Below, piece after piece: positions 7,868-63,706 of a stretch of DNA of 64,000 nt (its first letter is position 1; each line of letters starts with the position of its first letter). The DNA lies in NCBI RefSeq assembly GCF_020745735.1, contig NC_083409.1:16988619-17052618 (forward strand), in the 5' to 3' direction. The stretch comes from Hemiscyllium ocellatum. Lineage: Eukaryota. A program made the translations under genes and the position numbers. The notes under the pieces are model-generated. The model ran no database searches. It worked only from the letters and a program-made list of their open reading frames with translations, and was not told where the DNA came from.

Positions 7868-8196
7868 CTACACACATTCTGATCTCCTGATGCTCTTGCT
7901 GAGGGGAGAGGGGAGGGTCACATGGGTGAGGGCACAGGAGAAGCGAGCATTGGACTCCCAGTCAGACCCAGAGAGGGTCAGCAGGCTGCTGACACTGTAG
8001 GTGCTGTCCGAAGCTCGCAGGTAGTTGCTGGTCTGAACCCCGTCCGAAATGACTGCACCGTCCTTCTTCCACTGCACCTCCAGCTCATCGGGATAGAAGT
8101 GATTGGCAAGGCACACCAGGGTGGCAGTGCCCTTGGCATTGACCTGCTCCGGGGAGGGGGGCAGCAGGGTCAGCTTGGGCTGAGAGTTCTCACGGC
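7868..8196 (-). CDS. IGKC: Ig kappa-type light-chain constant exon, cluster 1 (intact)
   Basis: Acceptor tttctcttgtctttcag, phase 1. Translates (S)RENSQPKLTLLPPSPEQVNAKGTATLVCLANHFYPDELEVQWKKDG...FSCALTHVTLPSPLSKSIRRSECV-stop; C1-set Cys/Trp/Cys plus the C-terminal interchain Cys; resembles nurse shark NS4 C. Confidence 0.97.
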
Positions 8197-18970: not shown

Positions 18971-19639
18971 ACGATGAGAAGCTGGAAAAGCTGAAACTTT
19001 TTATTCTGACACGTAAGAGTCTGAGGAGTGACCTTGTAAAGGTTTATAAAATCATGAGGGTCATAGAAAATGTGAATAATTCAGGAAGGAGCTGAAGTTT
19101 TGTAGAAATGGGAAAAAATATTCCTGAAGATCCTTCCAGGGATGAGGAACATCAGTTATACAGATTGATTGGAGAATTTGGGACTGTCTTCTTTGGCGAA
19201 GGCTGAGAGGAGATTTGTTTGAGGAATTAAAACCAGGAGGGGCCTGGACAGGGTAAATAGGGAGAAAATGTTCCCAATTGAGAAAGGATTGAGACCGAGA
19301 GAACACAGATTTAAAGTAATAAGTAAAAGTAACAAAAGTGAGAGGGGGAACAACATTTTCAGCCAGTGGGTGGTTAAGGTGTGGAATGCACTGCCTAAGA
19401 GTGTGGTGGAGGCAGCTTCAATTAAAACATTCCGAAGGGAATGAGACTGTTATTTGAAAAGGAACAATGTGCAGGGTGACAGGGAGAAGGCAGGAGAATG
19501 ACACTCAGTGAATTGCTCAGTCGGAGAACCATGACAGACAGGATGGACGGAATGGCCTCCTTGTGCACTGTAACTATTCTGTGATTGTGTGATTGAGCAG
19601 AGTTAAAGCTGGGGGAGGTGGGAGCTCGGTGTCTCACTG

Positions 19640-19641
<2 letters not shown>

Positions 19642-19674
<33 letters not shown>
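19642..19674. repeat. (CTG)11 microsatellite abutting an isolated RSS heptamer; paralog (CAG)6 at 53772-53789
   Basis: cactgtg(ctg)11 at 19635-19674; (cag)6cacagtg at 53772-53796. Confidence 0.95.
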
Positions 19675-20047
19675 AGGTCAGTGAGATCAGAGACTGGGAC
19701 AGGGAGCCAGAGCTCACATCAAACTCTGCCCCGTGTCCGTCACACTGAGACTGGCAGGAGGCTACTCACTGATTTCACTCCATGCTGCAGGAATGGGACC
19801 ACAGGCTGCAAATGGACAGAGCTCCTCCACACGGTGAGTAAAACTGACTGACTTATATCTTGCTTCTTAAAGGGGGCAATGGAACTGAAGTGGTACGGTT
19901 GGACAACTGTTAGACACAGTGCTCCTTAATCAACCATTTCGTTCACTGCAGCTCCCCACTAACACCTTCAACAAATCAGTAACTGTATTTTAGAAAGTGT
20001 GTTTCAGTATTGAAAGGGTTAATAACAGAGGATTGAGGTTTACTTAC

Positions 20048-20082
20048 TCAGTCTGAGCTTGGTTCCTTTACCGAACGTGTCC
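20048..20082 (-). CDS. IGKJ: Ig kappa-type J segment, cluster 1
   Basis: G GAC ACG TTC GGT AAA GGA ACC AAG CTC AGA CTG A|gtaagt = [11 protein letters not shown]; FGxG motif and canonical donor. Confidence 0.97.
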
Positions 20083-20121
20083 CACAGTGAGAGTTCCCAG
20101 TGCAGAGGCTGTACAAAAACC
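20083..20121 (+). promoter_or_regulatory. J recombination signal sequence, 23-bp spacer
   Basis: CACAGTG (20083-20089) + 23 nt + ACAAAAACC (20113-20121): consensus heptamer and nonamer. Confidence 0.98.
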
Positions 20122-20553: not shown

Positions 20554-20581
20554 GGTTTTTGTATGGCTCTGTATCACTGTG
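20554..20581 (-). promoter_or_regulatory. V recombination signal sequence, 12-bp spacer
   Basis: Minus strand CACAGTG + atacagagccat + ACAAAAACC. V12/J23 is the kappa configuration; deletional joining would excise 499 bp (20083-20581). Confidence 0.98.
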
Positions 20582-20886
20582 TTGAGTGGAGCTGCTATAC
20601 AGGTTGTTCTGACAATAATAGTCAGCGACATCCTCATTCTGAACGTTGCTGATTGTCAGGGTGTAACTGGTCCCTGATCCACTGCCGGTGAATCGGTCAG
20701 AGACTCCTGTGTATCGAGATGTTGCAGCATAGATCAGGAGAGAGGGTTTCTGACCTTCTCGCTGCTGGTACCAACTGAGGTAGCTGCTAATGTCTTGACT
20801 GGCCGTACAGGTGATGGTTGCAGTCTGGCCCAGTTCCACTGACAGCACCGGGGGAGACTGGGTCATGATAATCTCCCCATTGATAC
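20582..20886 (-). CDS. IGKV: Ig kappa-type V exon, cluster 1 (open, unrearranged)
   Basis: (G)[101 protein letters not shown]; V-set Cys/Trp/Cys; acceptor ctgacccctcag. Confidence 0.98.
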
Positions 20887-21072
20887 CTGAGGGGTCAGAG
20901 AGAAACACAGTGAAGTCAGAACTGTCACAGAAAGAGCCTGTCAAATGAGAGATTGTTGGAGACACTGAGCATTCCTCTGGTTTCAGCATTTTCCCTTCAA
21001 TCACAAGTCAGTGGAATTGGAGTGAAATGGAGAGCAGCTAAAGATTCAAGGTGGAAGGAGAGAGATTTGTAC

Positions 21073-21121
21073 CTGCGACACAGAATGCCAGGGGCCAGAT
21101 CAGCTGGATGTGTGAAATCAT
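21073..21121 (-). CDS. IGKV: Leader exon, cluster 1
   Basis: ATG ATT TCA CAC...GTC GCA G|gtac = MISHIQLIWPLAFCVA(G); 186-nt phase-1 intron to V. Confidence 0.93.
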
Positions 21122-22564: not shown

Positions 22565-23049
22565 GCACACTCTCTGCCTTTCCAACAAGGTCCCAAGTGG
22601 TAAAAGTTAAATACAGGTTATATCTCCTCCAAATCTAATGGATGTTAACCCTTGACACCAGGAGTATGTCTGCTCCTGGAATAAAGGCCCATTTCCCACA
22701 TTGACCAGGGTTTGGCCTCTCTCAGGAAGACGGTCAGATTCTTGTCAAATGAAGGGCAATTCTGTGTTGTTGGCCCATTCTTACTGGAGACTGGTTTGGA
22801 CACAAACCTCATTCCATGAAAGCCCAGCAGAGGGAGGAGATCCTCAGGCCATCAGTTTGAGCTGGAGGGATAGGACAGGATCTGACCCATTGACCCATCC
22901 TATCCATTCACAACATGTTCCAATCCTTTCCCCTCACCTTCCCCTTCCATGGTCAAGCTCCAATTTTATTGGTATGAGGATTGGACCATCACACAGTTAC
23001 TACAGAAAGGAAATGAGCCCCACACTCACTACAGTATCCATGTCCCACT

Positions 23050-24615: not shown

Positions 24616-25549
24616 CCATCACCTAGGTCTCTTATTTCAATCTCCACTACATTGTTTGTCTCTGCACTACATCAGCCCCTTGACCACAGAAACTCTTATT
24701 CCTGCTCATCCCACCTCCAAACTCCAACATTCTGATGTCCTCTCTCAGCTTACTCCATCTGTGCTCCATAAATTCCAAATTGTCTGGAATGAAATGGCCC
24801 CTTCCCTGTCTCATACCAAGGAGGAGATTGACAGATTTGATTTTAGTAATTAGTTGAAAGGTTACGGAGAGTGGGTGTGGTCAGAATTGGTCAAATTGAT
24901 GACGGCTCCTGCAGTTGAATATCCTGCTGGCAGGCTCCAGCCTTTTACACACAGAATGGAGAAGTGTGTATTGCAGGCATATATTGTAAAGTTCCATAGA
25001 ATTAAACCTCAGCATCAAATGTCCCTCAGGAGGGGAGAGGGAATGTTCAGGGTCCTGAGCTCCATTTCCCAGCCCAGGCAGTTTGCCTCCCAATGAATGA
25101 ATGAGATGCCAGCTTGGAGCCCAGGTTAGGGACAGTCTCTGCTGTGGACCCAAGTCAACAAGAGGCAGCTGGAGATCGAGCTGAAAGGAAAGATTTGCTG
25201 GGTTATGGGGAGAGAGGGGGCAGTGGGAATAATTGGATCACTCACAGACACCACAGGTGGGGGGGGGGGGGGTGCAGGTTTAGGACTAAATAGAGAAGGA
25301 ACTTCTTCACCCAGAGGGTGGTGAATCTATGGAATTCCCTGCCCAGCGAAGTCGTTGAGGTTTCCTCAGTAAATGTTTTTAAAGCTGATTTAGGTAATTT
25401 TTTGAACAGTAAATGAATCAAGGGTTTTGGTGAAAAGGTGGATAAGGGGGAGCTGAGGCCATGAAAAGATCAGCCATGATCTTACTGAATGGCAGAGCAG
25501 CCCAAGAGGCCAGAGAGCCTGCTCCTTCTCCTGGTTTTAATGTTCTTAT

Positions 25550-25830
25550 GTGCTGTCAGATTCCAGGGAGTGCAGACAGTTCACAGTTTTCTCCCGTCTC
25601 AGTAACAAATGTCCAGCTGCTCCGAGCTCCTTCTTTCACTTCCTCACTTGGTGAAGTTTCAACCTTGCGATCTGACAGCCTTTGCAGTTATTTTTTACAC
25701 TGGGGCTTTCTGCTGTGGTCAGAATCTCTAATAATAAGTGTCCAATCAGTGACAATCACAGCAGCTAAGAGCAGTCAGGACTGAGGAGCCAGGCTCACTG
25801 GGAAACACATTGGGAAGATCAAAGCCATCC
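25550..25830. promoter_or_regulatory. Candidate light-chain enhancer, cluster 1
   Basis: Non-repetitive block about 94% identical to 46850-47130 by hand count. Contains EICE GGAAGTGAAA (minus, 25634-25643), E-box CAGCTG (25614-25619) and CCAAT (25742-25746). Confidence 0.55.
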
Positions 25831-25902
25831 CCTTCAGGTCCCGGTACAACCTCCATCCCTCTCCCTGAGCACTGTCTGCTGCTCAACCAGACTCTTTACA
25901 AA

Positions 25903-26142
25903 AACAGAATACCTCAGCAGGTCTGGCAGCATCTGGGGAAAGAAATCAGAGTTAACCTTTCAGGTCGAGTGACCCTTCCTCAGAACAGTTCTGAGAAGGT
26001 TCACGTCCCAAAATTTTAACTCTGCTTTCTCTCCACAGATGGTGCCAGACCTGCCGAGCTTTTCCAGCAATTTCTGTTTTTGTTCCTCATTTGCAGCATC
26101 TGCAGCTTTTTCGGCTTTTATTTAGTACCAGATTCCTTAAAA
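25903..26142. mobile_element. Palindromic Penelope pseudo-LTR-derived insertion with back-to-back hammerhead-like motifs
   Basis: Arms centred on ctcagaac-a-gttctgag (25987). Minus-strand CTGAGGA-A-GGGTC-ACTC-GACCT-GAAA-GG-TT. Absent at the paralogous site (about 46770-46780). Confidence 0.65.
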
Positions 26143-30989: not shown

Positions 30990-32300
30990 GTCCATGTTTG
31001 AACCAATCTGTAATGAAGCCAGGAGCTGAGTGACCCTGGTGGAACCCAAACTGGGCATCACTGAGCAGGTTATTGCTGAGCAGGTGCTGATTGATAGCAC
31101 TGTTGATGACATTCCATCACTTTCCCGATTATCGAGAGGAGACTGATGGGGCGGTAATTGGCTGGCTTGGATTTGACCTGCTTTTTATGTACAGGACATA
31201 GTTGGGTAATTTTCCACATTGTTGGGCAGATGCTAGTGTTATAGCTTTCCTGGAACAGCTTGGCTAGGGAAGTGACAAGTTCTGGAGCACAAGTCTTCAG
31301 TATTATTACCAGAATGTTGTTAGGGTCCAAAGCCTTTGCAGTACCCAGTGCCTCCACCCATTTCTTGATAACACGTGGAGTGAATCAAATTGACTGAAGA
31401 TGGTTATCTTTAATGCTGAGGACCACTGGCGGAGGCCAAGATGGATCATCCACTCAGAACTTCTGGCTGAGGATTTCTGCAAAAGCTTCAGCCTTATCTT
31501 TTGCCCTGATGTGTTGGACTCTTCCATCATTGAGGGTGGGGATATTTGTGGAGCCCGCTCATCCAGTGAGATGTTTAATCGTCTACCAGTACTCATGACT
31601 GGATGTGACAGGGCTGCAGAGCTTAGACCTGATCCATTGGTTGTGTGTTGTCTAATACTGTCTGTCAATTGCTGCTTGTGCTGCTTGCCATGCAAGTAGT
31701 CCTGTTTGGTGGTTTCACCTGGTAAATACCTCATCTTGGTAAAAACAATGACTGCAGATGCTGGAAACCAGAGTCTAGATTAGAGTGGTGCTGGAAAAGC
31801 ACAGCAGTTCAGGCAGCATCCGAGGAGCAGTAAAATCGACCTTTCGGGCAAAAACCCTTCATCAGGAATGCAGGAATACCTCATCTTGATGAATGACTGG
31901 TGCTGCTCCTGGTACGCCCTCCTGAATTCTCCATTGAACCAGTGTTGATTCCCTGGTTTGATGATAATGGTCGTGTCGGGGCTGGAGCACAATTCTGCTG
32001 CTGTTGATGGCCCACAGTACTTCATGGATGCCCAGTCATGAGTTGTGAGGTTGGTTGTAAGTCTGTCCCAGTTAGTCTCGTGAAAGTGCCACACAACACG
32101 ATGGAGGCTATTCTCAATGAAGGCGGGTGTTGGTCTTCACAAGGACTGTGCGGTGGTCACCCTTACTGGTACTTTCGTGTGGAGAAGCATCTGCAGCTGG
32201 CAGATTGGTAAAAATGAGTTCAAGTATGTTACATTTATAAAACTGTGCCACATCTTTATATAATTTTGGCTCAATAAAACACCTGATTCTGGATGCCTGT
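30990..32300 (-). mobile_element. Degenerate CR1/L2-clade LINE fragment
   Basis: KALDPNNILVIILKTCAPEL...VHKKQVKSKPANYRPISLLSIIGKVME (31070-31357). Confidence 0.75.
31739..31874 (-). mobile_element. 136-bp hammerhead-bearing mini-element with 14-bp TSD
   Basis: TSD aatacctcatcttg at 31725-31738 and 31875-31888; core CTGATGA-A-GGG-TTTTT-GCCC-GAAA-GG-TC at 31838-31865 (minus). Confidence 0.8.
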
Positions 32301-32599
32301 GGACAATTGGACAATTTCCAAATCCCCACGGTCCTGTCATGGAAATCTGATGTGCTCCTCACAATATCTCCATGTGATAGCTGGATGGTACCACGAGCCA
32401 ATATCTAACCAACCATTCTTCATCTGGGGGTCCATGGAGGGACGGTGGTGGGGGGGGGGGGCGGTCTCCACTTCCTCATCAGTGCTCCATTCTGAAGATA
32501 ATAGCATTCTGAAACCTCTCCAGCCTCGACCTCAGTATGAACTGACAGTGCTCATTTATTTCATTCGAGATCTGCTTTTTGGATCTGCTGTAATTAGGG

Positions 32600-34030
32600 A
32601 CATCATACCAACCACTCCACCTGGATTGTCTTCACCCTTTTGGAAAGTTTCAGCGATCCTTTCACTTGCTGTGATGTCACATCAACCCTTATTGATGGAT
32701 TTTGTTTAACCATTGCTCTGGTTACCTCACACGAAGGAGAGAGACCAGGAACCTGTTCCTGTCATTGTTCTGTTTCTTGGCCCTCCTTTGGACATTCTGT
32801 AATCATTGGGGAAGATACTGCCTTTAATCCTGACAAAATATTCCCCAGAAGAAAATCAACTCCCTCAACAGGGAATATTTTCCCCACTCCGACAATTACT
32901 TCTCCTGATAACAAATCACATTCCAGTTGTACATTTTGATGAACACCTTAGAATCCATTGAGCTCTCTGGAGGGAAAATCGATTCTTTCTCCAGTAAAAG
33001 TGATTGTATTGCCCCTGTATCTCTCAGTTTGATTCTGGGTTTAGCTGAAGAAAAAGGAGTCACCATTCCTTTTGATAAAAATCCTGTCCACCTCTCATCT
33101 ATTTTACAACTTCCTTTACTGATGACAGAATTCACCTCCAGCCTTTTTGTTATAGTTACAGCTACAACCTGCTCCGTGGGATTATCTGTTTGCATTCCCT
33201 CCTCTGACTCATTTTTACTAACTCCCATAAATCTCCTGGGTCTTACCTCACAGCTTCCAACATTCCATACGCACATGGCCCACCTTATTCCAAGAGAATC
33301 GTTTCAACTTCTGATCATCGCTTCCAGCCTCAGCAATTTCTTTCTTAATCTGAATAGTAGTTCTCGGGCAGGTCCCTCCTGTCCACTCTCTCCCCTGTCT
33401 ACCTGCCTTCCACACACACTCCCAATTTTTATTTTTCTCCCATTTCTGGGCCTGATGGGAATAAGGTTTCTGGATCGGTCTCCCATCAGGTGACTTCTCC
33501 ACCTCCTGATGCTGCTTGGCTTGTTGTGCTCTTCCAGCCTCCTGTTTGTCGACTTTGGATTCCAGCATCTGCAAGGTTTTGGCTTTAATGAAGACTATAA
33601 TCATTAACCATTCTAGCTGCTTGTCATGCTGTTCTTCCCCTTCAGGCTTTTACATGAATTCTGATTCTAGAAGGGAAGGAAGTTTTAAATCCTTCTCAGA
33701 GAATAATTTCTCCGACAGCATTGTAAGTATTCTCAGCTGTTAATACACTATGAACCTGTCAACATTATTTTGCTGAATTCTCTCAAACTCAGTAGAAGTT
33801 TGTGGAGGCTGTTTCTGTAAGTTCTGAAACATCTGTCTGTATGTTTCTGGGATCGATGCAGATGTGCTTTTCACCTTTTCACTTCCTTGTGATCCTGAGA
33901 ATGTTCCTCTGGCAGGGATATAGAAACTTCTTGTGCTTCCCAAGTTCATTTTGCATGGGCAAACTCCATTGTTTTTCCTCGCCTCACGTGTTGAAATATC
34001 TTCTCAAAAGACATGAAAAATGTCTACACC
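32600..34030 (-). mobile_element. Gmr1-like Ty3/Gypsy gag-protease remnant
   Basis: Protease motif LRDTGAIQSLLL (32896-33276); decayed zinc knuckle NKVGHVRMECWKL (33248-33604); SCAN-like YRQMFQNLQKQPPQT..EFERIQQNN (33740-33949). Confidence 0.7.
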
Positions 34031-35639
34031 TCCTTCTCTTCATAGTCATAGAGTCATAAAGCAAACAAACAGGCCCTTCTGCCCACCATTTTGATGCTGA
34101 TCAGGAACCACCAAACTGCACTAATCCCATTTACCTGCACTTGGTCCATAGCATTCCATGCCCTGGCATTTTATGTGCTCATCTGGATGTGTCTTAAATG
34201 TTGTGAGAGGAGCTGCCTCCATCACCTTCTCAAGCAGCACATTCCATATTTCTACCACCCTCTGGGGTAAAAAATATCCTCAATTCCCCTCTCAACCACC
34301 TTTTCATCACATTAAGCTTATTCCCTCCGGTCATAGACATGTCTGCCACGGGGAAAAGATGATCACAATTGACTTTGTTTATGTCTCTCAGAATTTTGTA
34401 GCCCTTAATCAGATTCACCAACCCCTTCCACCACGCCCCCCCCCCACCCCACGCCCCCATGCTTCCTCTGCTCCACAGGAAACAAACTCAGTTGATCAAG
34501 TCTCTCTCCTCATAACTAACACTTTCCATCCCAAGCAACATCCTGGTGAATCTACTCTCCACCCTCTCCAGTCCAATCATGTTTTTCCAACAGTGATATG
34601 TACACAGTGTTCCAGATATGGCCTAACCAATGCTCTGTAAATTAACAATGAGACTTCCTTACTCCGATATTCTACACACTGGCTAATGATGGCAAGCATC
34701 CCATATGCCTTCTTCACCACCCTGTCTAGCTGTGCTGATACCTTCTGGGATCGCTGGACTTGTACACCAAGGTCCCTTTGTTCCTCACTACTCCCAAGGA
34801 ACATGAGAACATAAGAGCTAGGAGCAGGAGTTGGCCATCTGGCTCTTCGAGCCTGCTCCACTGTGCAATAAGATCATGGCTGATCTTTTCCTGGACTCAA
34901 CTCCACATACCTGCACTCTCATCTTATCTCTTAATTCCTTTATTTTTCAAAAAAAAATCTGAGCTCTAAAAATATTTACTGAAGAAACATCAACTACTTC
35001 ATAGGACAAGAAATTTCATAGATTTTGACCCTCTGGGTGAAGAAGTTCCTTCTCAATTCAATCCTAAATCTGCTCCCCTTAATTTTGAGGCGATGCCCTC
35101 TTGTCCAAGTTTCACCTGCCAGTGGAAATATTCTCTCTACTTCAGTCTTATCTATTCTCTTCATAATGTTATATGTTTCTATAAGATCCCCCCTCATTCT
35201 TCTAAGTTCCAATGAATATATGCCAGTCTACTCAGTCTCTCCTCATAAGCCAACACCCTCAACTCTGGAATTAACCTTCTCTGCACCCCTTCTAGTGCCA
35301 GTACATCCTTTCTCAAGTAAGGAGACCAAAACTGCACAAAGTACTCCAGGTGTGGCCTCACCAGCACCCTGTACAGCTGCAACATAACCTCTCTGCTTTT
35401 TAAACTCAATCCCTTTAGCAATGAAGGACAAAATTCCATTTGCCTTCCTAATTGCTTGTTGTACCTGTAGACCAACCCTCTGTGATTCATGCATAAGGAC
35501 ACTCAAGGCACATGCCTTTCATTGTGTATATCCTTCCCTTATTAGACCTCCCAAACTGGATCACCTTACACTTGTCAGGATTAAATTCCATCTGCCATTG
35601 TTCTGCCCAGTTACCAGCTGATCAATATCAGACTGTAGC

Positions 35640-36410
35640 CTGAGACCCAGTAATCCAAGATGGCAGCAGAGTAGGACTCTTCAGACCAAGTTCATCTGCT
35701 CCGTCTGTTTCCTTTTCTGCTTTTTCTTCCACTGGTTTTTATTTTCTTTTGTGCTTTTCTTTTGCGGTTCTCTCTTCTTTTCTCTCCCAGCCACGGACTT
35801 CCAGCCTCACTCGCCAGGCCTCTGACCAGTGCAGCCCCAGTGTTGCGGCCTCTTGACTTGGTGTGGCAGAGTCCTAACCTGGCAGAGAGACCTCCCAGCT
35901 CGGTGAGGCAGACTCTCGGTCTGACGTGTTGGGCTCTCAGTTTAATGTGGAGGCCTCTCGGCTCAGAATGCTCGACTGTCACTCCAGCGTGACGAACTCT
36001 CGGCCTAGCATGGCGATCTCTCAATGGACCAACGTGGTTGTCTCTCGGCCCACAGGGTGGTCTTTTGCTGTATATAATGGTCTTTCAGCCCAGCACAGCC
36101 TCAGCTTGCCTTCCGGTCTCGAAGTGAATGATTCAAAGTATGATCCCACGGTAGCTAAGCACTTAAGAAAGACTGTAATGATTGAACTTCCAGATTTATT
36201 TCTTTATTTTATTCTTAAAACTAAAAAGGTAAAAAAGTCTGTAACGTGTAACTTTTAAATATATTCTTTCTTTATACCTTGTTCTTAAGATTCTGTATCT
36301 CGGTCCTTGTACCTAAGATGGCTCCTTCCAAGGTGACATCACATACTTTTCACTGTACTCCAATACTTTTGTACTTGAGTCCATGTAACAATAAAATAAA
36401 ATCAATATCA
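35640..36410 (+). mobile_element. Retroposon with an L2-like 3' tail and an internal degenerate 21-bp repeat
   Basis: ctctcgg-like cores at 35892, 35913, 35934, 35955, 35976, 35997, 36018 and 36042; tail cactgtactc...gtacttgagtccatgtaacaataaa. Confidence 0.45.
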
Positions 36411-39037
36411 ACAACACCACCAATTTACGTGGCATCTGAAAACTTTCTAATTATACAAACACAGTCAATTCATTAAGGTACATTACAAACAGAAAGGGTC
36501 GCAGCCCCAATTCCTGTCATACACCACTGGTCACAGGCTTCCAATTACGAAGACAACCCTTCACCAACTTGTCAACTTGCCTTGGATCCCATGGGCTCTG
36601 ACCATCTGGACCAGCCTTCCATGTGGGGCCTTTGTCAAACAAATCAATACTGGCATCCCGACCTCTTCAAGTATTGCTTAATCCTGTACTTCAGGATTTT
36701 TTCTAATAATTTCCCTCACACTGACATCAGACTAACTGGTCTGGAATTGCCTGGCCTATCCCTGCTGCCCTTCTTGAACAAAGGAACCACATTGACAATC
36801 CTCCAGTCTGGCACTTCACCTGTGGCCAGCGAAGTATTCATCAAGGAAAAGGCAATTAAACTTTCAAGACAATGAAATGAAAACTACAGTTAAGTTAAAC
36901 CTAAAGACACGTTAGAGAAATGAACGCCTTCTCACTGTTATTTCAATACAATAAAGCTATAATGTTTGAATAGAAAGGATTTTATTTTGCCTTGTTTTGA
37001 AATCTTTTGCAATTGTGTTTTCTGTCAGTATGTTTTATTTTATCATCATTTCTTTTGTGCACTGAGGTCTATTTATTCAATCTAAATCATCAGCATTGCG
37101 TACTTATGCTCTACAGATGCTGCAGACCAACTGCATTTCTTCAGCAGTTTGTTTGTGTTTCAGTCTGAGATCTGTGTTGTCCAATAATACCAGCAGTTGG
37201 GATGGGAATAGTTGGCTAGCATCATTATTGTCACTCTAATTAGAAATTGACACTTCGTATTTGATGAATCCAACAAACCCTTACACTGTTTTCACATCTG
37301 TCCGTCACCACATCACTGCCACCGCTCTTACCTTTCCAGAATCCAGGCAAATCCTTTTGCTCTCAGTATGTGACTGATGTACTTGGGCATCTTTAATTGC
37401 AAACTTTCTTGTTCAGCCTAATGACTCTTTCTTTCTTGTTCAGCTCCTGACAAGCTACACCCTGCAGGCCACTAGATGATTGTGGTCAGCAATGCTTTGT
37501 ATCTAGAATAGCCCACTTTGTCCCCATATCCTTCTCACTCACACTCTCAACTGATTACCCAGCTTGCCGTGTTTGAGGAGAAATTGACTCGAAATTGAAT
37601 CAACTGTTGGTATTTCATGTGGCCATTCAATTGGAAAACAAGTATATTTACACTGAAGTTAATAAATTATAAATGTATAATAATTGGACAGAATGATATA
37701 TTAAACTTTGCAGCATTTGAGGGATATAACTTTTGCCGGTTTGTCAAGAATGCCGGTTCATAAGGCACAGGTTACAACAACATTTGCTGCGTATCTTTTA
37801 TAATAGACTCCCGTATTTCTCCCACTACTGATGCCAAGCTAACTGGTCGACAAAAAACACTGTGTTCTATCTGTCTTCCTTCTTAAAATAGTGGGGTTAT
37901 TTTAGCCACTTTCCAGTCCATAGGAACTGCTCCTGAGTCTAGATTTCTGAAAGATGACGACGAGTGCATCTATTCTTTCTAATACCACTTTCCTAAGTAT
38001 TCTGGGGTGAGGGGATCAGGCTGCCAAAGATATTTTATGGCCCCTCTTTGTCCTCCTATTTTTTAAGTACCCCCCCACACTTTCGCTTCTCCCGAAGGGC
38101 CTCCCCTCTTTTTAAAGCTCTGTACTTGGTATGTGCTTATTCCTTTTTCTTTCACAAACTATCCATGTCCTTTGACATCCAGGATCCCAGGAGCTGCTGT
38201 CCTTGCCTTTCTTTCTGAGCTGGCCCTGAACTACATTAAAAAGATCCCCATTTTCCAAATGTAGACTGACCTCCAAGTAACTGATCCCAGTCTATATTTG
38301 CCAGATCCTGTCTAATGAAATTGAAATTGGTCTTGCCTCACTTTAGACATTTAACTTCTGCACTACCCTTATTCCTTTCCATAATAGTTAGGAAACGTAC
38401 GGAGTTATGTTCACTATCTCCAAAATGCTCACCCATTGACTCTTCAACAATTTGACATTACTCGGATTGAGCCCAGCACTGCCCATGTCTAGTGGGACTA
38501 TCTACGTACTGGCACCAAAAGCTCTCCTGGATGGACTTTAAAAATTCCATTCACATGAAGTCAAACATAAAGTTTATGTTAGAGAAGTTGAAATTCCTTG
38601 CTAATATAGCCCTATTCCTCTCAAGCCTCTCATTGCTTTGCCGACATATCTGCTCCTCTCTCTCCATCTGACTATTGGGGAGGCTGTAGTATAAGCCCAG
38701 CAAAGTGATTGTCCTTTTGTCTAGCTCTACCCAGACGGCGTCATTTGAAGACCCTTCCAAGAAATGCTCCTTCAGTAGCAATACTGCAGTCATGGTTTCT
38801 TTTATCAATAATGCAACACACCCACCTCTCTTGCGCCCTGTCTATCCCACCTCAGACTTGTCTACCCTGGAATGTTGAGTGGCCAGTCCTATCTTTGTTC
38901 AATCTTGTCTCAGCAATTGCAACAATATGATATTCCAAAAAGACAATGCAACAGCATATGAAATAGCATAAGAGATATGGTTAGTAAGTTTGCAGATGAC
39001 ACCAAAATTGGAGGTGGAGTGGACAGCAAAGAAGGTT

Positions 39038-39175
39038 CGGAGAAAGTGAGGACTGAAGTTGCTGGAGATCAGAGCTGAAAATGTGTTGCTGGAAAAGCGC
39101 AGCAGGTCAGGCAGCATCAAAGGAGCAGGAGAATCGACGTTTCGGGCATAAGCCCTTCTTCAGGGATTTCTTTTA
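39038..39175 (-). mobile_element. 138-bp hammerhead-bearing mini-element with 13-bp TSD, inserted in a CR1 LINE
   Basis: TSD agcaaagaaggtt at 39025-39037 and 39176-39188; intact core CTGAAGA-A-GGGC-TTAT-GCCC-GAAA-CG-TC at 39136-39163 (minus). Confidence 0.85.
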
Positions 39176-43875: not shown

Positions 43876-46849
43876 GGACCTGAGAAAGCTCAAAGGAACA
43901 GAATGATCTTGGGGTACTTGTCCACTGATCCCCGAATGTGGCAAGACAGGTTAACAGAGGACACTTGCCTTGGTCATGTCAGGTATTGGTTATAAAAGCA
44001 GGAGGAGATGGTGCAGTTAAGCAGAACATTGGTTAGCCCACAGCTGGAGTACTGTGTGCAGTTCAGGTCACCACACTGTAGGAAGGATGTGATTGCACTG
44101 GATGGGGTGCAGAGGGGAATCACCAGGATGTTGTGTGGGACGGAGCCTCTTAGTGATGAAGAGAAATTGGATCAGCTCGGTTGTTTTCTTCAGAGCAGAG
44201 AAGGTGGAGGGGGACCTGATCGAGGTGTATAAGGTTATGAGAGGAATGGACAGGGAGGAGAGAAAGCAGCTGTTCTTCTTCATGGGAGGGTCAATAAAAA
44301 GTTGGTTTACATTCATTGTGAAAGATAGGAAGTTTCAAGATGTTTTGAGGAAAATGTTTTTTTATCCAGAGGGTGGTGGGGGTCTGGAACGCACAGCCTG
44401 GGAGAGCAGTTGACGTGGGAAACCTCACAAACTTTAAAAAGTACTTGGGTGAGCAGTTGAAATGTCATAACATTCTAGCTATGGGCTCATATTGGAAAGT
44501 GGGATTGGTGCAGGTTTAGTGTAGTTTGGCTGGTACACAGTTAATGGGCTGAAGGACCTGTTCTGTACTGTGTGATTTTATGATTGTATTGTGTACAGTT
44601 TTGGTCTCCTTATCTGAGAAAGGATGTTCTGGTTGTGGAGGGAGGACAGCGAAAGTTTACCAGACTGATTCCTGGGATGACAGCACTTAGATCTGTTGAG
44701 AAACTGGATCAGTTAGGATTATATTCACTGGAGGTTAGAAGATTGAGAGGAATCACGTTGGAACCTTTAAAATCCTAACAGGACAAGACCGGAAAAACAC
44801 AGGAAGTATGTTCCTGATCATTGGAGAATCCAGAACCAGGAATTACAGTTTAAAGAAAAGGGAAAGGTTATTTCAGACTGAGCTGAGGAGACATTTCTTT
44901 AGCCAGAGAGTGGGAAGCTCATGGAATATTCTATCACAGAAAGCAGTTGAGACCAAAACATTAAAAGTTTTCAAGAAGGAGATAGGTCTAAAGGGACTTA
45001 GGACGAAAGGGATTAAGGTTATGGGAAAAAAGTGGGAACGGGACTAAGTTGAATGATCAGCCATGGTCATATTTAATGGCAGACCCCACTCGAAGGGCTG
45101 AATGGCCTACTCCTGCTGTTCGTTACTTTGTTTCTGCGTTTGAGAGACTGTCCGTAAACATGGAAACATATGGAATTATAGAGTCAAAGAGTCATCGAGT
45201 CCTACAGCACAGAGACAGGCTTTTTGGTCCACACTGGTCCATGCTGACCAAAATGTCCATCCATGCTAACCCCATTTCCCTGCACTTGGCCCATATCCTT
45301 CGGAGCCTTTCCTATCCATGTATTTGTCCAAATGCCTTTTTAAAGTTGTTAATATACCCGCCTCAATCACTTCCACTGGCAGATCATTCCATATGCGTGC
45401 CACCCTCTGTGTAAACAAGTTGTCCCTCAGGTTCCCTTTTATTCTTTCTCCTCTAACCTAAAACCCCTCTCATCCTCAATTCCCCAACACTGGGAAAAAG
45501 ACTGAGTGCATTTACCCTATCCATGTCTCTCAAGGTCTTATACACTTCTAAAAAAAAACCCTCAGTCTCCTACACTCTCTGAAAAAAGTCCTAGCTTGTC
45601 CAACTTCTCACAAAAACTCAGACTGTTGAGTCCTGGCAACATGCTTGTACATTTCCTCTGAACTTGTTCCAGTTTAATAATGTCCTTCCTATAACAAGGT
45701 GACCAAATACTCCAAGTGCGACCTCACCAACGTTCTGTAAAATGGTAACATAACTTCTCAACTTCTATACTCAATGCCCTGACTGATGAAGGCCAGTGTG
45801 TCAAAAGCCTTCCTCACTGCCCTGTCGAACTGTGACTCAACTTCCAGAGAACCGTGTACCTGAACTCCAAGATCTCTCTGTTTCACTACAGTCCTTAGGC
45901 CTTACCATTCACCATGGTACTCCCACCTCGATTAAACTTCCGAAAGTGCAAGACCTCACAATTATCTCTCTGAACTCATTTTGTCATTTCTCTGCCCATT
46001 TCTCCAGCTGATCAAGGTCCTGCTGCAATTTCTGATAACCTCCCTCAATGTCTACTGTAATGTCATCTGCAAACTTACCAATCATGCCTTGCAGATTCTC
46101 ATCCAAATTATTGATGTAGATAGCAAAGAGTAATGGAAACAGGACCTAGCCCTGAGGCACTCCTCTAGACACAGGCCTCTAGTCTGACAAGCATCCTTCC
46201 ACTGTTACCCACTGCTTCGTACCATCAAGCCAATCAAAGAAAAGTATTTGTCTTTGGTCAGGAATTAGTTTGGAGGTAGGAGGCAGAGAGGAAGAATAGT
46301 GAGTGCATCCTCCAGTGAGGAAGATGTGAATAGTATCCCCAGGGATCTGTGCTGCGAGCTCAGCTTTTTAAGATATTTCTCAATGACTTGGATGAAGAAA
46401 CAGAGAGCTGTACATCCAAGATTGCTGATCACACTGACTGAGGCAGCTTGGAGGAGGTTACAGAGATAGGGAGGGTGGAGGGCAGAGAGGGTTTTGCGAA
46501 CAAGGATGAGAACTTGACAATCAAGGAGTTGCTGGAAAGGAGCCAATGTAGAAACAGGGTGCAGGGGGTTGGGGGAACAGGACTTGATGCAAGTTTGGAT
46601 ACAGGCATCAGAATTTGGAATGAACTGAAGGTTATGGAGGGCGATTGCTGTGATGTGTGTGAGCACAACATTGGAATGGTCATGTTTGGAGTCCCCAGAC
46701 ATGATTGAGATTTTCAGTGGCTGGTCTGTATAATATGGAGAATATGGGGCTCAGATCATTCTCAGAGATGTGGCCACATTTGTAAAGAGTCTGGTTGTGC
46801 AGCAGACCCCCAGGGAGAGGGATGGAGTTTGGAGCAGGAGATGAAGAGG

Positions 46850-47130
46850 ATGGCTTTGATCTTCCCAATATGTTTCACAGTGAGTCCGGGCTTCTCAGTC
46901 CTGACTGCTCTTAGCTGCTGTGATTGTCACTGATTGGACACTTATTATTAGATATTCTGACCACAGCAGAAAGCCCCAGTGTAAAAAATAGTTGCAAAGG
47001 CTGTCAGAGCACAAGGTTGAAACTTCACCAAAAGAGGAAGTGAAAGAAGGAGCTCGGAGCAGCTGGGTGTTTGTTACTGAGATGGGAGAAAACTGTGAAC
47101 TGTCTGCTCTCCCTGGAACCTGACAGCACA
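46850..47130. promoter_or_regulatory. Candidate light-chain enhancer, cluster 2
   Basis: AAAAGAGGAAGTGAAAG with EICE at 47036-47045; CAGCTG at 47060-47065; ATTGG at 46933-46937. Confidence 0.55.
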
Positions 47131-49054
47131 GGAGGCTGGGTCTGGGATTTTTCTTTTCAGAAACAGCACAGTGATGGAAAAAGTGTCAGTCACTCTCTCA
47201 CAAACACACACGCCTGCACTTGGAGATTAGAAACAGAATCCAGCAGCAGCTCTGTCTCCAAGCTGTGAAACCTGCACAGAATTGTTCCCTCATTCAGTTT
47301 ATAACTGGCAGGATAGACCAAGCAGGGGAAGCAACACAGTGGTGTGTACAGTCAGAAGGGAGTTGCCCTGGGAGTCCTCACCATTAACTATGGAACCCAT
47401 GAAGCCTCATGACAGCAGGTCAAACATGGGGAAGGAAACCTCCTGCTGATTACCACATAGCACCGCCCTCCCCTCCAACCTCAACTGAGCAGTCAGTCCT
47501 CCTCCATGTTTGACAACACTTGGAGGGAGCATTGAGGGATGGAAGGACGCAGGATATACCCTGAGTAAGGGACTTCAAAGTCCACCATCAAGAGCTGCTC
47601 AGAATCATCACTACTGAGCAAGCTGGTCAGGTTCCACCTGATTCAGCTGCGAGACTGGACCTGGGGCAGGTGGTGAGGGAACCAACAAGAGGGAACAACA
47701 TACTCACTATCACCCTCACCAACCTGCCTGCTGCTGGTGTATCTGTCCATGACAGTATCAGTAAGGGTGACCACCGCACAGTCCGTGTGGAGACAAAATC
47801 CCATCTTCACATTTAAGTTACCTTACATTTTGTTGGGCAAGAGATTCGGGATGTCAGGAAGAACTTTGTTTTGAACAGCAATTGGTAATGACTTGGAAAT
47901 TAGTGCCATTCAGGTGAGGCAGGTGAAGACACTCAGTGATTGCAATGGCAGATTGGATGGGCTCTTGATGGAAATAAACCTGCAAGGCTCTGGGGGTCGA
48001 GTAGGGATTGCTCCATGAAATGACAGCATTTACCTGACAGGCTGAATGTTCTCCCCCTGTGCTGGAAATAGGTCTAACTCAATGAGGGGTTCACAATTAG
48101 AGAGTTTGGATGCAGTAAATACAGGACAAATTGTTTCTCCAGGCAGGAGGGTCAGTAACCAGAGGGCACACATTTCAGAAAGGGTCTGAAGAACAAGAGA
48201 GAAGATAGGAACATTTTTATCCAGCGAGTTTATGATGTCTGTCTGCAAGGTGAGTGGGAGTGGATTCAACAGCAACTTTCAAAAGGGCCTTTGGAGAAAT
48301 AGCTGTAAAGGAAACAATTGCAGGGTTATACAGGAAGGGCTGGGTAAATGGGACTAATTGGACTAATTTGTCTAACTGTCACAATAGGCCCAATGACCTC
48401 TGTCTGTGCTGTATAAGAACTTACACACACTTAGTCTCACCTTTACACAAAGACTAGGAGAAACAGACAACCCAGTTTACAAAAGAATGCTTTCTCAAAC
48501 ACTCTTGAACCAACTCAGGGAACAGGCCCAGACTAGATTTACTAGAGTAAGTCAGCAAATCAATGACAAGGGAACAGTAAACCAAAAGCAATGGGACTGA
48601 ACAATATATTCAGTAACACAACAATTGAGAGGAGGAGGGATGAAGGGCAGGAGGTCAGAGAGCATGCTGTAGGGGCCTGAAGGCTCTGCTGTCAATGGTG
48701 GGATGGAGGAAGCAGCAATGGACAGGAGACTAGAGACAGAAGATGGAAAGGGGAGGAAGGGAATGGAAGCAGCAGGACACAGATTGAGGGAGGAGGGAGG
48801 CCATGGAGGCAATTGGTTGGCAGTGAGCTCATTCTTGAACGACTTCAGATGTCAGACAAGGAAGGGACCACTCCATATCAGACAAGTTGGGGTTTATGGA
48901 ATGTGACTTCAGGAAGCTGGGAGAGGACATTAGAATCAATAGTTAGGACAAGCAGGAATTAGTGTTTCTGTGGCCAGGGGACTGAAGTCGTGCAGAGACA
49001 GACAGTGTTGTTGAGACTGAAATAAGGGACCTTCATGATGGAGTGGATTTTGGG

Positions 49055-50715: not shown

Positions 50716-52658
50716 AACACATGGTGGGTATGTAGTCAGTTCCTTTCTGTTGTAACTGTGTGATGCTCCAGCGCTCATCCCAGTCAAAAAGCCTGATTCA
50801 GAGACTGATCATGGAAGGGGAAGGAAAGGGAAAAGGATTGGAATATGTTGTGGATGGACAGGCTGGGTCACTGGGTCAGAAATTGTCCTGTCCCTCCAGC
50901 TCACACTGATGGCCTGAGGATCTCCTCTCTCTCTGCTGGGCCTTCATGGAATGAGGTTTGTGTCCAAACCAGTCCCCAGTGAGAATGGGCCAACAGAACA
51001 GAACTCCCCTTCATTTGACAAGAATCTGTCCATCGTCCTGAATGAGGTCAATCCCTGGTCAATGTGAGAAATGGGGAGTTACTCCAGGAAAAGACATGCT
51101 TTTGGGTCAAGGGTTAACATCCATTAGTGGGGCAGAGCAGAGGGAGATTTATCCTGAATTCAACTTTCACCACCTGGGACACTGTGAGAAAGACAGAGAA
51201 GCAAGACAAAGAGAGAGGTAGAGGCAAATTGTGTGTGTGATCGAGTGATTGAGGGAGGGGCATCTGAGACAGTGTGTGATATGTGAAGGGGCCAAGAGAG
51301 AGGTAGAGGGAGGTAGACGTGGTGTGATTGAGGGATAGAGAGAGAGAGAAACAAGATGTGACTGATCAGGATGGATAGAGAAAAGAGTGATACCAAGAGT
51401 GAAGAGAATCAATAGAGAATGGGTAGGGTTGAGTGTGAGAGAGAGAGAGAGACATGAGTATGGTAAGAGACAGAATGACAGAGAAGGAGGGAGAGAGACT
51501 GTAGATTGGAGTGCAGAGAGGGAGGGAGAGACAGAGAGAAGAATAGAGAGGGGCAATTAACATTTGGAGGTTTTCAATTGAAGCGAGCAATGGAGCGAGT
51601 GATGGTGAAAGAGAAAGATGCAGAAATAGAGATTATGAGACGGAGTGAGGAAGTGTAAGTTGGAGAGAGTGGCTTTGAGACAGAGTGAGAGAGAAAGAGA
51701 GAGAGAGACAGAGACAGAGGGACAAGTCCTGGTCACCACATTCTTGGAAGGACGTGATTGTACTTGAGAGGGTGCAGAGATTTACCAGGATGCTGCCTGG
51801 GATGGAGGGTCAGCTGTGGAGAAAGATTGGAATGGTTGGGGTTGTTTTCCATGCAGCAGTGAAGGCTGAGAGGGGACCTGATAGAGGGGGATAAGATTAT
51901 TCAGGGCAGTGATAGGGGGAGTAGGAAGGCACTTTTTACAAGAGTCAAGGACTCAATAACCAGGGACAGAGATTGAAGGAAAAATAGACATGGACACAAA
52001 GAAAGTGCTGCAGGAGTAGGCCATTCGGCCCTTTGAGACTGTTCTGTCATTCAGTATGATCATGGCTGATCCTCTCTCTTGAAGTCATCTTCCTACTTTC
52101 CCCCCATTCCCTTCATGCTGTTAAAATGCAAAACAAATATCTCTCTCTTTCTCTTGAATATATTCAGTTCCTTGTCCTCCATAGCCTTCAGTGGAAGATA
52201 ATTCCACAGATTAACCATCCTCTGAGTGAAGAAATGTTTCCTCATCTCAGTCTGAAATGGTCTACCCCATATCCCCCTGAGACTGTCTCCCGGTTCCAGA
52301 CTCCCCAACCAGGGGAAACCTCCTCCCTGCCCAGCCCTGTTAGAATATGATACATTTCAATCAGATCCCCTCTTATCCTTCTGAGTCCAGGCCCAATCGA
52401 GTTGGAGAGTGAGAGAAGAGTTAGGGAGAAATGTTTTCATCCAGAGGGTGGTGGGAGTCTGGAACTCACTGCCTGAAAGGCTGGTTGAGTCACAAACTCT
52501 CAGGACATTGGAGCAGTGTTTAGATATTCCCTTGTGTTGCTGTAGCCCCAGGGTAATGGGCCAAGAGCTGGAGGATCATCAGATCTTTGTTTACCAGCAC
52601 AGACACAATGGGCCAAATGGCCTCATTCAGTGCTGTCCACATCAATGATTCTCTGAGA

Positions 52659-52690
<32 letters not shown>

Positions 52691-52700
52691 GAGAGAGAGA

Positions 52701-52798
52701 AGAGGAAGTGTGAGGGGCTGACGTGGCTCTCTCTGCCTGATGCCATTTACACACTGAGGAACACCCAGTCAGACTCTCACAGGCTGCAGCTTTATAAA
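52701..52798 (+). promoter_or_regulatory. V-kappa promoter, cluster 2
   Basis: AGAGGAAGTG (52701-52710), TGACGTGG (52719-52726), octamer further degraded to ATTTACAC (52745-52752), TATAAA (52793-52798). Confidence 0.7.
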
Positions 52799-52858
52799 GC
52801 AGAGCCCAGTGAAGGGAGAGTTTATCAGGAACCAGGCACAGGGACAGGAGCACACACC

Positions 52859-52907
52859 ATGATTTCACACATCCAGCTGATCTGGCCCCTGGCATTCTGT
52901 GTCGCAG
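52859..52907 (+). CDS. IGKV: Leader exon, cluster 2 (identical to cluster 1 leader)
   Basis: MISHIQLIWPLAFCVA(G)|gt. Confidence 0.9.
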
Positions 52908-53093
52908 GTACAAATCTCTCTCCTTCCACCTTGAATCTTTAGTTGCTCTCCATTTCACTCCAGTTCCACTGACTTGTGATTGAAGGGAAAATGCTGAAAC
53001 CAGAGGAATGCTCAGTGTCTCCAACAATCTCTCATTTGACAGGCTCTTTCTGTGAAAGTTCTGACTTCACTGTGTTTCTCTCTGATCCCTCAG

Positions 53094-53412
53094 GTATCGG
53101 TGAGGACATCATCATGACCTAGTCTCCCCCGGTGCTGTCAGTGGGACTGGGCCAGACTGCAACCATCACCTGTAGGGCCATTAGCAGCTACCTTGCTTGG
53201 TACCACTAGCGAGAAGGTCAGAAACCCTCTCTCCTGATCTATGCTGCAGCAACTCAACTCACAGGAATCTCCGAGTGATTCACCGGCAGTGGATCAGGGA
53301 CCAGTTTCACCCTGACAATCAGCAACGTTCATAATGAGGATGTCGCTGACTGTTACTGTCAGCAGCATTACAGCTGGCCTTACTTTCGGTAAAGGAACCA
53401 AGCTCAGACTGA
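53094..53412 (+). pseudogene. IGKV: Pre-joined (germline-joined) kappa VJ pseudogene
   Basis: V runs directly into TTCGGTAAAGGAACC with no RSS. Stops TAG 53120, TAG 53207, TGA 53276; 9-nt CDR1 deletion; junction CCT-TACT-TTC is out of frame; donor GT changed to GG at 53413-53414. Confidence 0.95.
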
Positions 53413-63377: not shown

Positions 63378-63706
63378 GCCGTGAGAACTCTCAGCCCAAG
63401 CTGACCCTGCTGCCCCCCTCCCTGGAGCAGGTCAATGCCAAGGGCACTGCCACCCTGGTGTGCCTTGCCAATCACTTCTATCCCGATGAGCTGGAGGTGC
63501 AGTGGAAGAAGGACGGTGCAGTCATTTCGGACGGGGTTCAGACCAGCAACTACCTGCGAGCTTCGGACAGCACCTACAGTGTCAGCAGCCTGCTGACCCT
63601 CTCTGGGTCTGACTGGGAGTCCGACGCTCGCTTCTCCTGTGCCCTCACCCACGTGACCCTCCCCTCTCCCCTCAGCAAGAGCATCAGGAGATCAGAATGT
63701 GTGTAG
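63378..63706 (+). CDS. IGKC: Ig kappa-type constant exon, cluster 2 (open ORF but orphaned)
   Basis: Intact acceptor and reading frame; 4 nt differences from C1 (P>L, N>D, plus silent changes). Confidence 0.93.

Follow-up and report, generated by a model that had tools for sequence, protein, structure and literature searches.

The antibody genes of sharks are spread over roughly a hundred or more separate miniloci, which raises the question of how a B cell comes to activate one or a few of these. For that question, a short conserved block with defined sites provides a concrete object. Activation of one or few clusters in shark B cells has been proposed to reflect infrequent assembly of a promoter-enhancer complex, with no enhancer named (PMC2435157). 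Here we analyze such a block in the window, the whole stretch of 64,000 nucleotides under study, where the initial annotation had pointed to a candidate enhancer of kappa light-chain genes.

The window contains two kappa-type V-J-C light-chain miniloci arranged head to head as an inverted duplication, whose arms are collinear over about 7.6–27.9 kb and 44.0–64.0 kb. Their features are as follows.

20582–21121, minus strand: cluster A gene, the candidate target of the block, with its ATG at 21121
21121–21073, minus strand: cluster A leader exon
21072–20887, minus strand: cluster A leader intron, its splice joint seen in RNA contigs
20886–20582, minus strand: cluster A V exon, with a 12-spacer RSS at 20581–20554
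20048–20121, minus strand: cluster A J segment, with J coding at 20082–20048
20121–20113 (nonamer) and 20089–20083 (heptamer), minus strand: cluster A J 23-spacer RSS
7871–8196, ends approximate, minus strand: cluster A C exon
52859–53410, plus strand: cluster B leader, V and J, with the ATG at 52859 and V and J fused in the germline

The cluster A promoter places an octamer-like ATTTACAT and a TATA-like box immediately 5′ of the ATG. Cluster B has in-frame TAG codons at 53120–53122 and 53207–53209 and an out-of-frame J, and the arm alignment reveals that ~400 bases between V and J are missing; it is a dead, germline-joined pseudogene. Its V has a shortened CDR1, and its fused VJ region lies at 53360–53400.

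Identity between the live and the dead cluster varies along the arms. It reaches 98% across the promoter, leader and leader intron (arm B 52675–53060) and 99% in the C exon (arm B 63431–63631), and stands at 89–92% in the V exon and 85–92% in the J-C intron. The J-proximal intron at 19321–19721 retains 94–95% arm identity, although it includes a (CAG)n tract as well as an interspersed repeat common in sharks. This mosaic is clearly conversion-like, with gene conversion acting in the window, and because of such mosaics arm-to-arm identity is not clean evidence of constraint.

Upstream of V, both arms contain the block, which in arm A is bordered by two younger elements.

25549–25902, minus strand (V orientation): block of cluster A, with a best-kept core at about 25570–25800
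46779–47130, plus strand: counterpart (twin) at cluster B, in the second duplication arm
25252–25548, arm A: later insertion of a retroelement tail, separating the block from its ancestral flank at 25020–25251
25903–26126, arm A: later insertion of a high-copy hairpin element, forming the V-distal block edge and a gap relative to arm B

The inverted pair 25549–25793 / 46886–47130 is 94% identical over 245 ungapped nt, and BLAST extension to 25549–25902 / 46779–47130 yields 91.3% identity, with 31 differing positions over 354. The collinear upstream flanks are 74–77% identical in BLAST segments (76–80% in a sliding profile), in agreement with the initial annotation, which had put adjacent shared sequence at only ~75%. 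Its estimate of ~18 differences, or ~94%, was right that the block is well kept and slightly too high in value, as 21 differences fall in the 281-base span (about 92.5%). Conservation of the block is significant at P about 1e-12 against 23% divergence and at 0.0016 against a 12% intron background. Among about a hundred 200-column windows between the arms, the block ranks with the six best; the remaining ones cover the promoter/leader, the C exon and a stretch of J-proximal intron. BLAST recovered no further copies within the 64-kb window besides the syntenic twin, which bears out the description of a unique ~280-bp block upstream of both V genes. Measured from the start codons at 21121 (minus) and 52859 (plus), the block lies about 4.5 kb (cluster A) and 5.8 kb (cluster B) 5′ of V, the distances first proposed, and both blocks sit between two divergent V genes.

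The two later insertions set the block edges in arm A. The hairpin element at 25903–26126 has a depth above 200,000, with many opposite-strand joints in contigs, and may belong with small mobile elements at 31739–39175. Arm B has no interruption at the V-distal edge, where identity falls from over 90% to 77%. A search for the arm B counterpart of the 25020–25251 flank returned none, so the V-proximal edge is not definable from the two arms. On that side, arm B contains about 1.7 kb of unrelated sequence (47131–48853), an insertion or a replacement; in arm A and in another species, this position next to the block is occupied by the 25020–25251 flank.

Several simple identities for the block were evaluated and rejected. 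It is not a protein-coding exon, since each of the six frames is interrupted by stops in both copies, and in the longest open stretch the arm differences show no bias by codon position (6/4/5). Nor is it a structured RNA: there is no Rfam match and no tRNA, and folding-energy z-scores against shuffles are 0.22 and 0.03 for the two strands. Transcription was assessed in B-cell-rich runs of two other organisms (X15 and X17), which are RNA because the leader intron is spliced out in their contigs (joint 20883–21070) and V exon depths reach 3,000–970,000. The block is not an abundant transcript in these runs, with depths of 22 and 13 compared with 0.1–25 for unique intergenic bins. In both runs, contigs read across block and flanks without splicing, with neither a joint nor a molecule start reported; block words are absent from the RNA runs of organism A (same sample). 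Raw single-cell RNA reads of a related species (X35) matched nowhere in the window, V genes included, and so carry no weight here. Finally, the block is not a high-copy repeat, as its depth is on the V-gene scale, 10–100 times below that of neighbouring repeats, and it has one syntenic twin in 64 kb. The possibility raised at the outset that it is a repeat or an exon of another gene was checked: it is not a coding exon, and its depth and its single twin in 64 kb are not those of an interspersed repeat.

The block contains a dense set of predicted lymphoid binding sites, given here in V orientation.

25818–25824, minus strand: TCF/LEF-type CTTTGAT
25742–25749, plus strand: CCAAT/Y-box CCAATCAG, which is CTGATTGG on the other strand
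25728–25737, plus strand: MEF2-type CTAATAATAA, fitting YTAWWWWTAR
25714–25719, plus strand: RUNX core TGTGGT
25702–25711, plus strand: kB-like GGGGCTTTCT, a 9/10 match to GGGRNNYYCC
25633–25645, minus strand (twin 47034–47046, plus strand): EICE (PU.1/IRF composite) GAGGAAGTGAAAG
25614–25619 (twin 47060–47065): E2A-type E-box CAGCTG, 14 nt 3′ of the EICE

Read toward V, CTTTGAT is followed by the Y-box CTGATTGG, the MEF2-type site, the RUNX core and the kB-like site, and ~55 bases further on by GAGGAAGTGAAAG, 14 bases and CAGCTG. The predicted EICE-E-box core of the block is therefore GAGGAAGTGAAA-14 nt-CAGCTG. The EICE core GGAAGTGAAA at 25634–25643, identical to the mouse lambda-B site, fits GGAAnnGAAA and is kept in both copies. 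These account for the only two occurrences of the 13-mer GAGGAAGTGAAAG in the window. As first noticed, EICE, E-box and CCAAT are all retained in the two copies, with an E-box gap of 14 nt in both. YTAWWWWTAR has three matches in the window, two of which are the two blocks. The strict kB consensus GGGRNNYYCC has no match anywhere in the window, GGGGCTTTCT itself failing the strict form. The Y box CTGATTGG also suggested an MHC class II-type S-X-Y promoter; inspection by eye found no convincing X box, and this candidate was dropped.

In order to evaluate site content, the block was compared with shuffled sequence and with the rest of the window. The MEF2, RUNX, TCF and kB-like sites were added to the site list after inspecting the block, and because of this post hoc choice the site-content and site-avoidance figures are inflated: of 11 lymphoid site types, 6 are present in the block, while other 354-base windows in the 64 kb hold at most 3; six types are reached by none of 5000 dinucleotide shuffles of the block; the combination of EICE, E-box and MEF2 is seen in a single one of 5000 shuffles and is absent from the 1055 other windows; and all 31 arm differences lie outside the 57 positions covered by sites (post hoc P 0.004). 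For EICE, E-box and CCAAT alone, avoidance of arm differences is not significant (P about 0.085), and survival of these three motifs in both copies is expected because arm identity is this high. EICE matches are not enriched either, as the window has 5 occurrences of GGAANNGAAA where 4.5 would be expected, which is chance level. For an EICE with an E-box at the spacing of the block, shuffles give 0.03 pairs per window. A third, unpaired EICE/E-box combination (CAGATG-12 nt-TTTCACTTCC) is found at 33859–33886 on the plus strand, in the unconserved, repeat-rich centre between the arms; shuffles predict 0.12 such pairs per window, and it may be chance or a further site. By themselves, these motif arguments are weak.

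Two further motif occurrences were recorded. An octamer-like ATTTTGCAT lies about 60 bases from the third EICE/E-box pair, and GAGGAAGTGTAAG at 51647–51659, 1.2 kb upstream of the arm B V, matches the PU.1 portion of the motif with a single mismatch.

Copy depth provided a view beyond the two arms. DNA contigs of the window's own organism (run X1), matched at ≥85% likeness, gave these depths.

Block: 3,124
Promoter/leader: 2,608
V exon: 900–1,600
Other unique upstream bins: 100–560
Neighbouring repeats: 30,000–560,000

Block depth is 5–30 times that of other unique upstream DNA. These depths indicate that the block is kept in about as many copies as the V promoter, and that the intervening DNA has drifted out of range. 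The expectation that other kappa clusters keep the block agrees with its multi-copy presence on the V-gene scale. The majority of X1 copies differ from arm A at only six listed positions (25610, 25611, 25646, 25831, 25838 and 25850), and arm B agrees with the majority at each of these, making the block of the dead arm the more consensus-like copy.

The block is also present in other species. A contig of organism D covers 25669–25901 with 8 differences in 233 (3.4%; 96.6% identity), whereas flank contigs of the same organism are 12–17% different (Fisher P 9e-6). In organism E, a 785-base contig covers 25570–25901 with 18 differences in 332 (5.4%; 94.6% identity) and joins this segment to 25020–25251 with 36 letters between, lacking the arm A retroelement-tail insertion. 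Within this single contig, the flank is 9.1% and the block 5.4% different, a contrast that is not significant (P 0.13). In seven further organisms, runs share 12–72% of the block's 31-letter words, which agrees with a wide presence of the block.

How the block compares with described enhancers depends on whether sites or position are considered. To our knowledge, light-chain enhancers are all located either within the J-C intron or 3′ of C, with none 5′ of V; the block lies in neither of the known places, and the claim that the candidate element is 5′ of V rather than 3′ of C holds at both leader ATGs. In teleosts, Ig enhancers (catfish IgH E-mu-3′, cod light-chain) are located at non-mammalian places, per cluster in cod, and have been demonstrated by reporter assays 3′ of C. 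The shark block, in contrast to these, is 5′ of V and a candidate from sequence. PU.1-family genes are present in cartilaginous fish, as Anderson et al. reportedly found in 2001. A close likeness is to the mammalian kappa 3′ core, whose true EICE-E-box spacing may be 15 nt and which, as drawn in one supplementary figure, has an EICE and then an E-box in the same order, on the same strand and at the same 14-nt spacing, both systems being kappa-type genes. In that machine-read figure, the human and mouse core reads GAGGAACTGAAA-14 nt-CATCTG (PMC3972084 Fig. S5B). Unlike the block, this core (PU.1 / NF-EM5=IRF4 / E2A) is 3′ of C, and there is one per large locus rather than one per small V-J-C cluster; the likeness is one of sites.

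Lambda enhancers (cIg-lambda-E, E-lambda 2-4/3-1, hIg-lambda-E) also resemble the block, with E-box, kB-type, MEF2 and PU.1-IRF4 sites within about 150 bases. Such E-box, NF-kB, MEF2 and PU.1-IRF4 sites are conserved in common among chicken, mouse and human lambda enhancers; mutating them abolishes enhancer function, and the same sites are needed for hypermutation targeting, independently of transcription (PMC3972084). The chicken enhancer, as far as the figure displays it, contains CAGCTG, GGGCATCCCC, CTAAATTTAC, CCAATCAG and AAGGAAACGAAA within about 130 bases (PMC3972084 Fig. S2B). On this figure, its kB-MEF2-CCAATCAG order is identical to that of the shark block, while the shark EICE sits on the other side of the kB/MEF2 group with its orientation reversed. 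The block further differs from lambda enhancers in its kB-like site, which is only 9/10, in its extra RUNX and TCF sites, and in its location 5′ of V. On paper, then, the block resembles kappa 3′ and lambda enhancers in site architecture, not in position. The literature searched yielded no account of an Ig enhancer in cartilaginous fish, a 2016 review (PMC5192425) not containing the word, and nothing usable on a shark or teleost light-chain enhancer.

We consider the block to be a cis-regulatory module, most likely a B-lineage enhancer 4–6 kb 5′ of V that is copied with each cluster, and assign this reading a probability of roughly one half. That an Ig light-chain enhancer-type module occurs per cluster, 5′ of V, in a cartilaginous fish is plausible and unproven. 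For the enhancer interpretation of the initial annotation, the conserved, unique, non-coding sequence and its kappa 3′-like core stand in favor, while the chance-level EICE count and the third, unpaired EICE/E-box combination stand against it. The related statement that each cluster carries its own EICE enhancer must be squared with cluster B being a dead pseudogene, whose copy is nonetheless closer to the consensus. Under the enhancer reading, a Spi-family factor (PU.1/SpiB) and IRF4/8 would co-bind GAGGAAGTGAAA, with an E2A-type bHLH factor on CAGCTG, 14 nt away, and MEF2, RUNX, NF-Y and possibly Rel factors would occupy the adjoining 50-base cluster. The complex would then loop to the octamer/TATA promoter of V, opening the cluster for transcription and perhaps also making it ready for V-J joining and hypermutation. 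An element 5′ of V remains linked after rearrangement, because V-J joining deletes only about 450 bp between V and J.

Other explanations account for part of the same evidence. Foremost among them, the block could be a functionless conversion or hitch-hiking patch, homogenised by the copying process that acts on the promoter, leader intron and C exon, which we regard as possible, if unlikely. The live/dead mosaic (98% for promoter, leader and leader intron, 99% for the C exon, 94–95% at 19321–19721) is what such a process would leave, the consensus-like block copy does sit in dead arm B, and the same-contig contrast between block and flank in organism E is not significant. Within-species conversion, however, cannot explain the cross-species identity (3.4% in organism D vs 12–17%); moreover, unique upstream DNA between block and promoter is 5–30 times less deep, the arm differences avoid all predicted sites, and site density in the block is the maximum of the whole window. 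A mobile-element fragment or neutral relic, duplicated along with the clusters, is very improbable: although the region is repeat-rich and repeats bound the arm A block on both sides, its depth on the V-gene scale (10–100 times below neighbouring repeats), its single, syntenic twin in 64 kb, and its better preservation than the flanking old repeats all speak against such an origin.

Two more readings grant the block a function of another kind. Many myeloid and B-cell promoters are TATA-less and combine a CCAAT box with an Ets site. As the block likewise has a CCAAT box and an Ets site without a TATA box, and as its CCAAT box, PU.1 site and a CAG/GT at 25836–25839 could serve a start site, it might be a promoter, or a first exon, for a non-coding or germline (sterile) transcript directed away from V. 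Contigs over the block do occur in RNA-type runs of two species, but their depth of 13–22, compared with 3,000–970,000 over V exons, equals intergenic background; these contigs run unspliced through the block with no joint or molecule start reported, most copies have C in place of the donor-like G at 25838, and the organism A RNA runs (same sample) lack block words, which leaves this reading quite improbable. The block might instead have another cis role, in hypermutation targeting (DIVAC-type), in recombinase access, or as a boundary between head-to-head clusters. Its position between two divergent V genes in both arms would suit such a role, and, in Ig enhancers, E-box, NF-kB, MEF2 and PU.1-IRF4 sites are required for hypermutation targeting in a transcription-independent manner (PMC3972084). 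Against it, a function in hypermutation or recombinase access is inseparable by sequence from an enhancer role, and we judge this alternative rather improbable.

If the preferred enhancer reading is right and the block is active, PU.1-IRF/E2A/MEF2 enhancer logic would date to the root of jawed vertebrates. A bolder proposal, which we consider doubtful, is that the block represents the first antibody-gene enhancer of a cartilaginous fish, with a site grammar homologous to the kappa 3′ core and lambda enhancers, and that it acts as a 5′ on-switch for each minilocus and as a hypermutation mark. Were the shared grammar (EICE-14 nt-E-box, kB/MEF2) real, it would predate the kappa/lambda split; were the on-switch real, the block would be the physical basis of the one-cluster-per-cell choice of sharks.

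A second upstream island was also observed nearer to V, at 22636–22949 in arm A and about 50850–51200 in arm B. It lies 1.5–1.8 kb 5′ of the ATG with 88–89% arm identity, has an X1 depth of 1809, and is covered at 88–92% by contigs of two other species.
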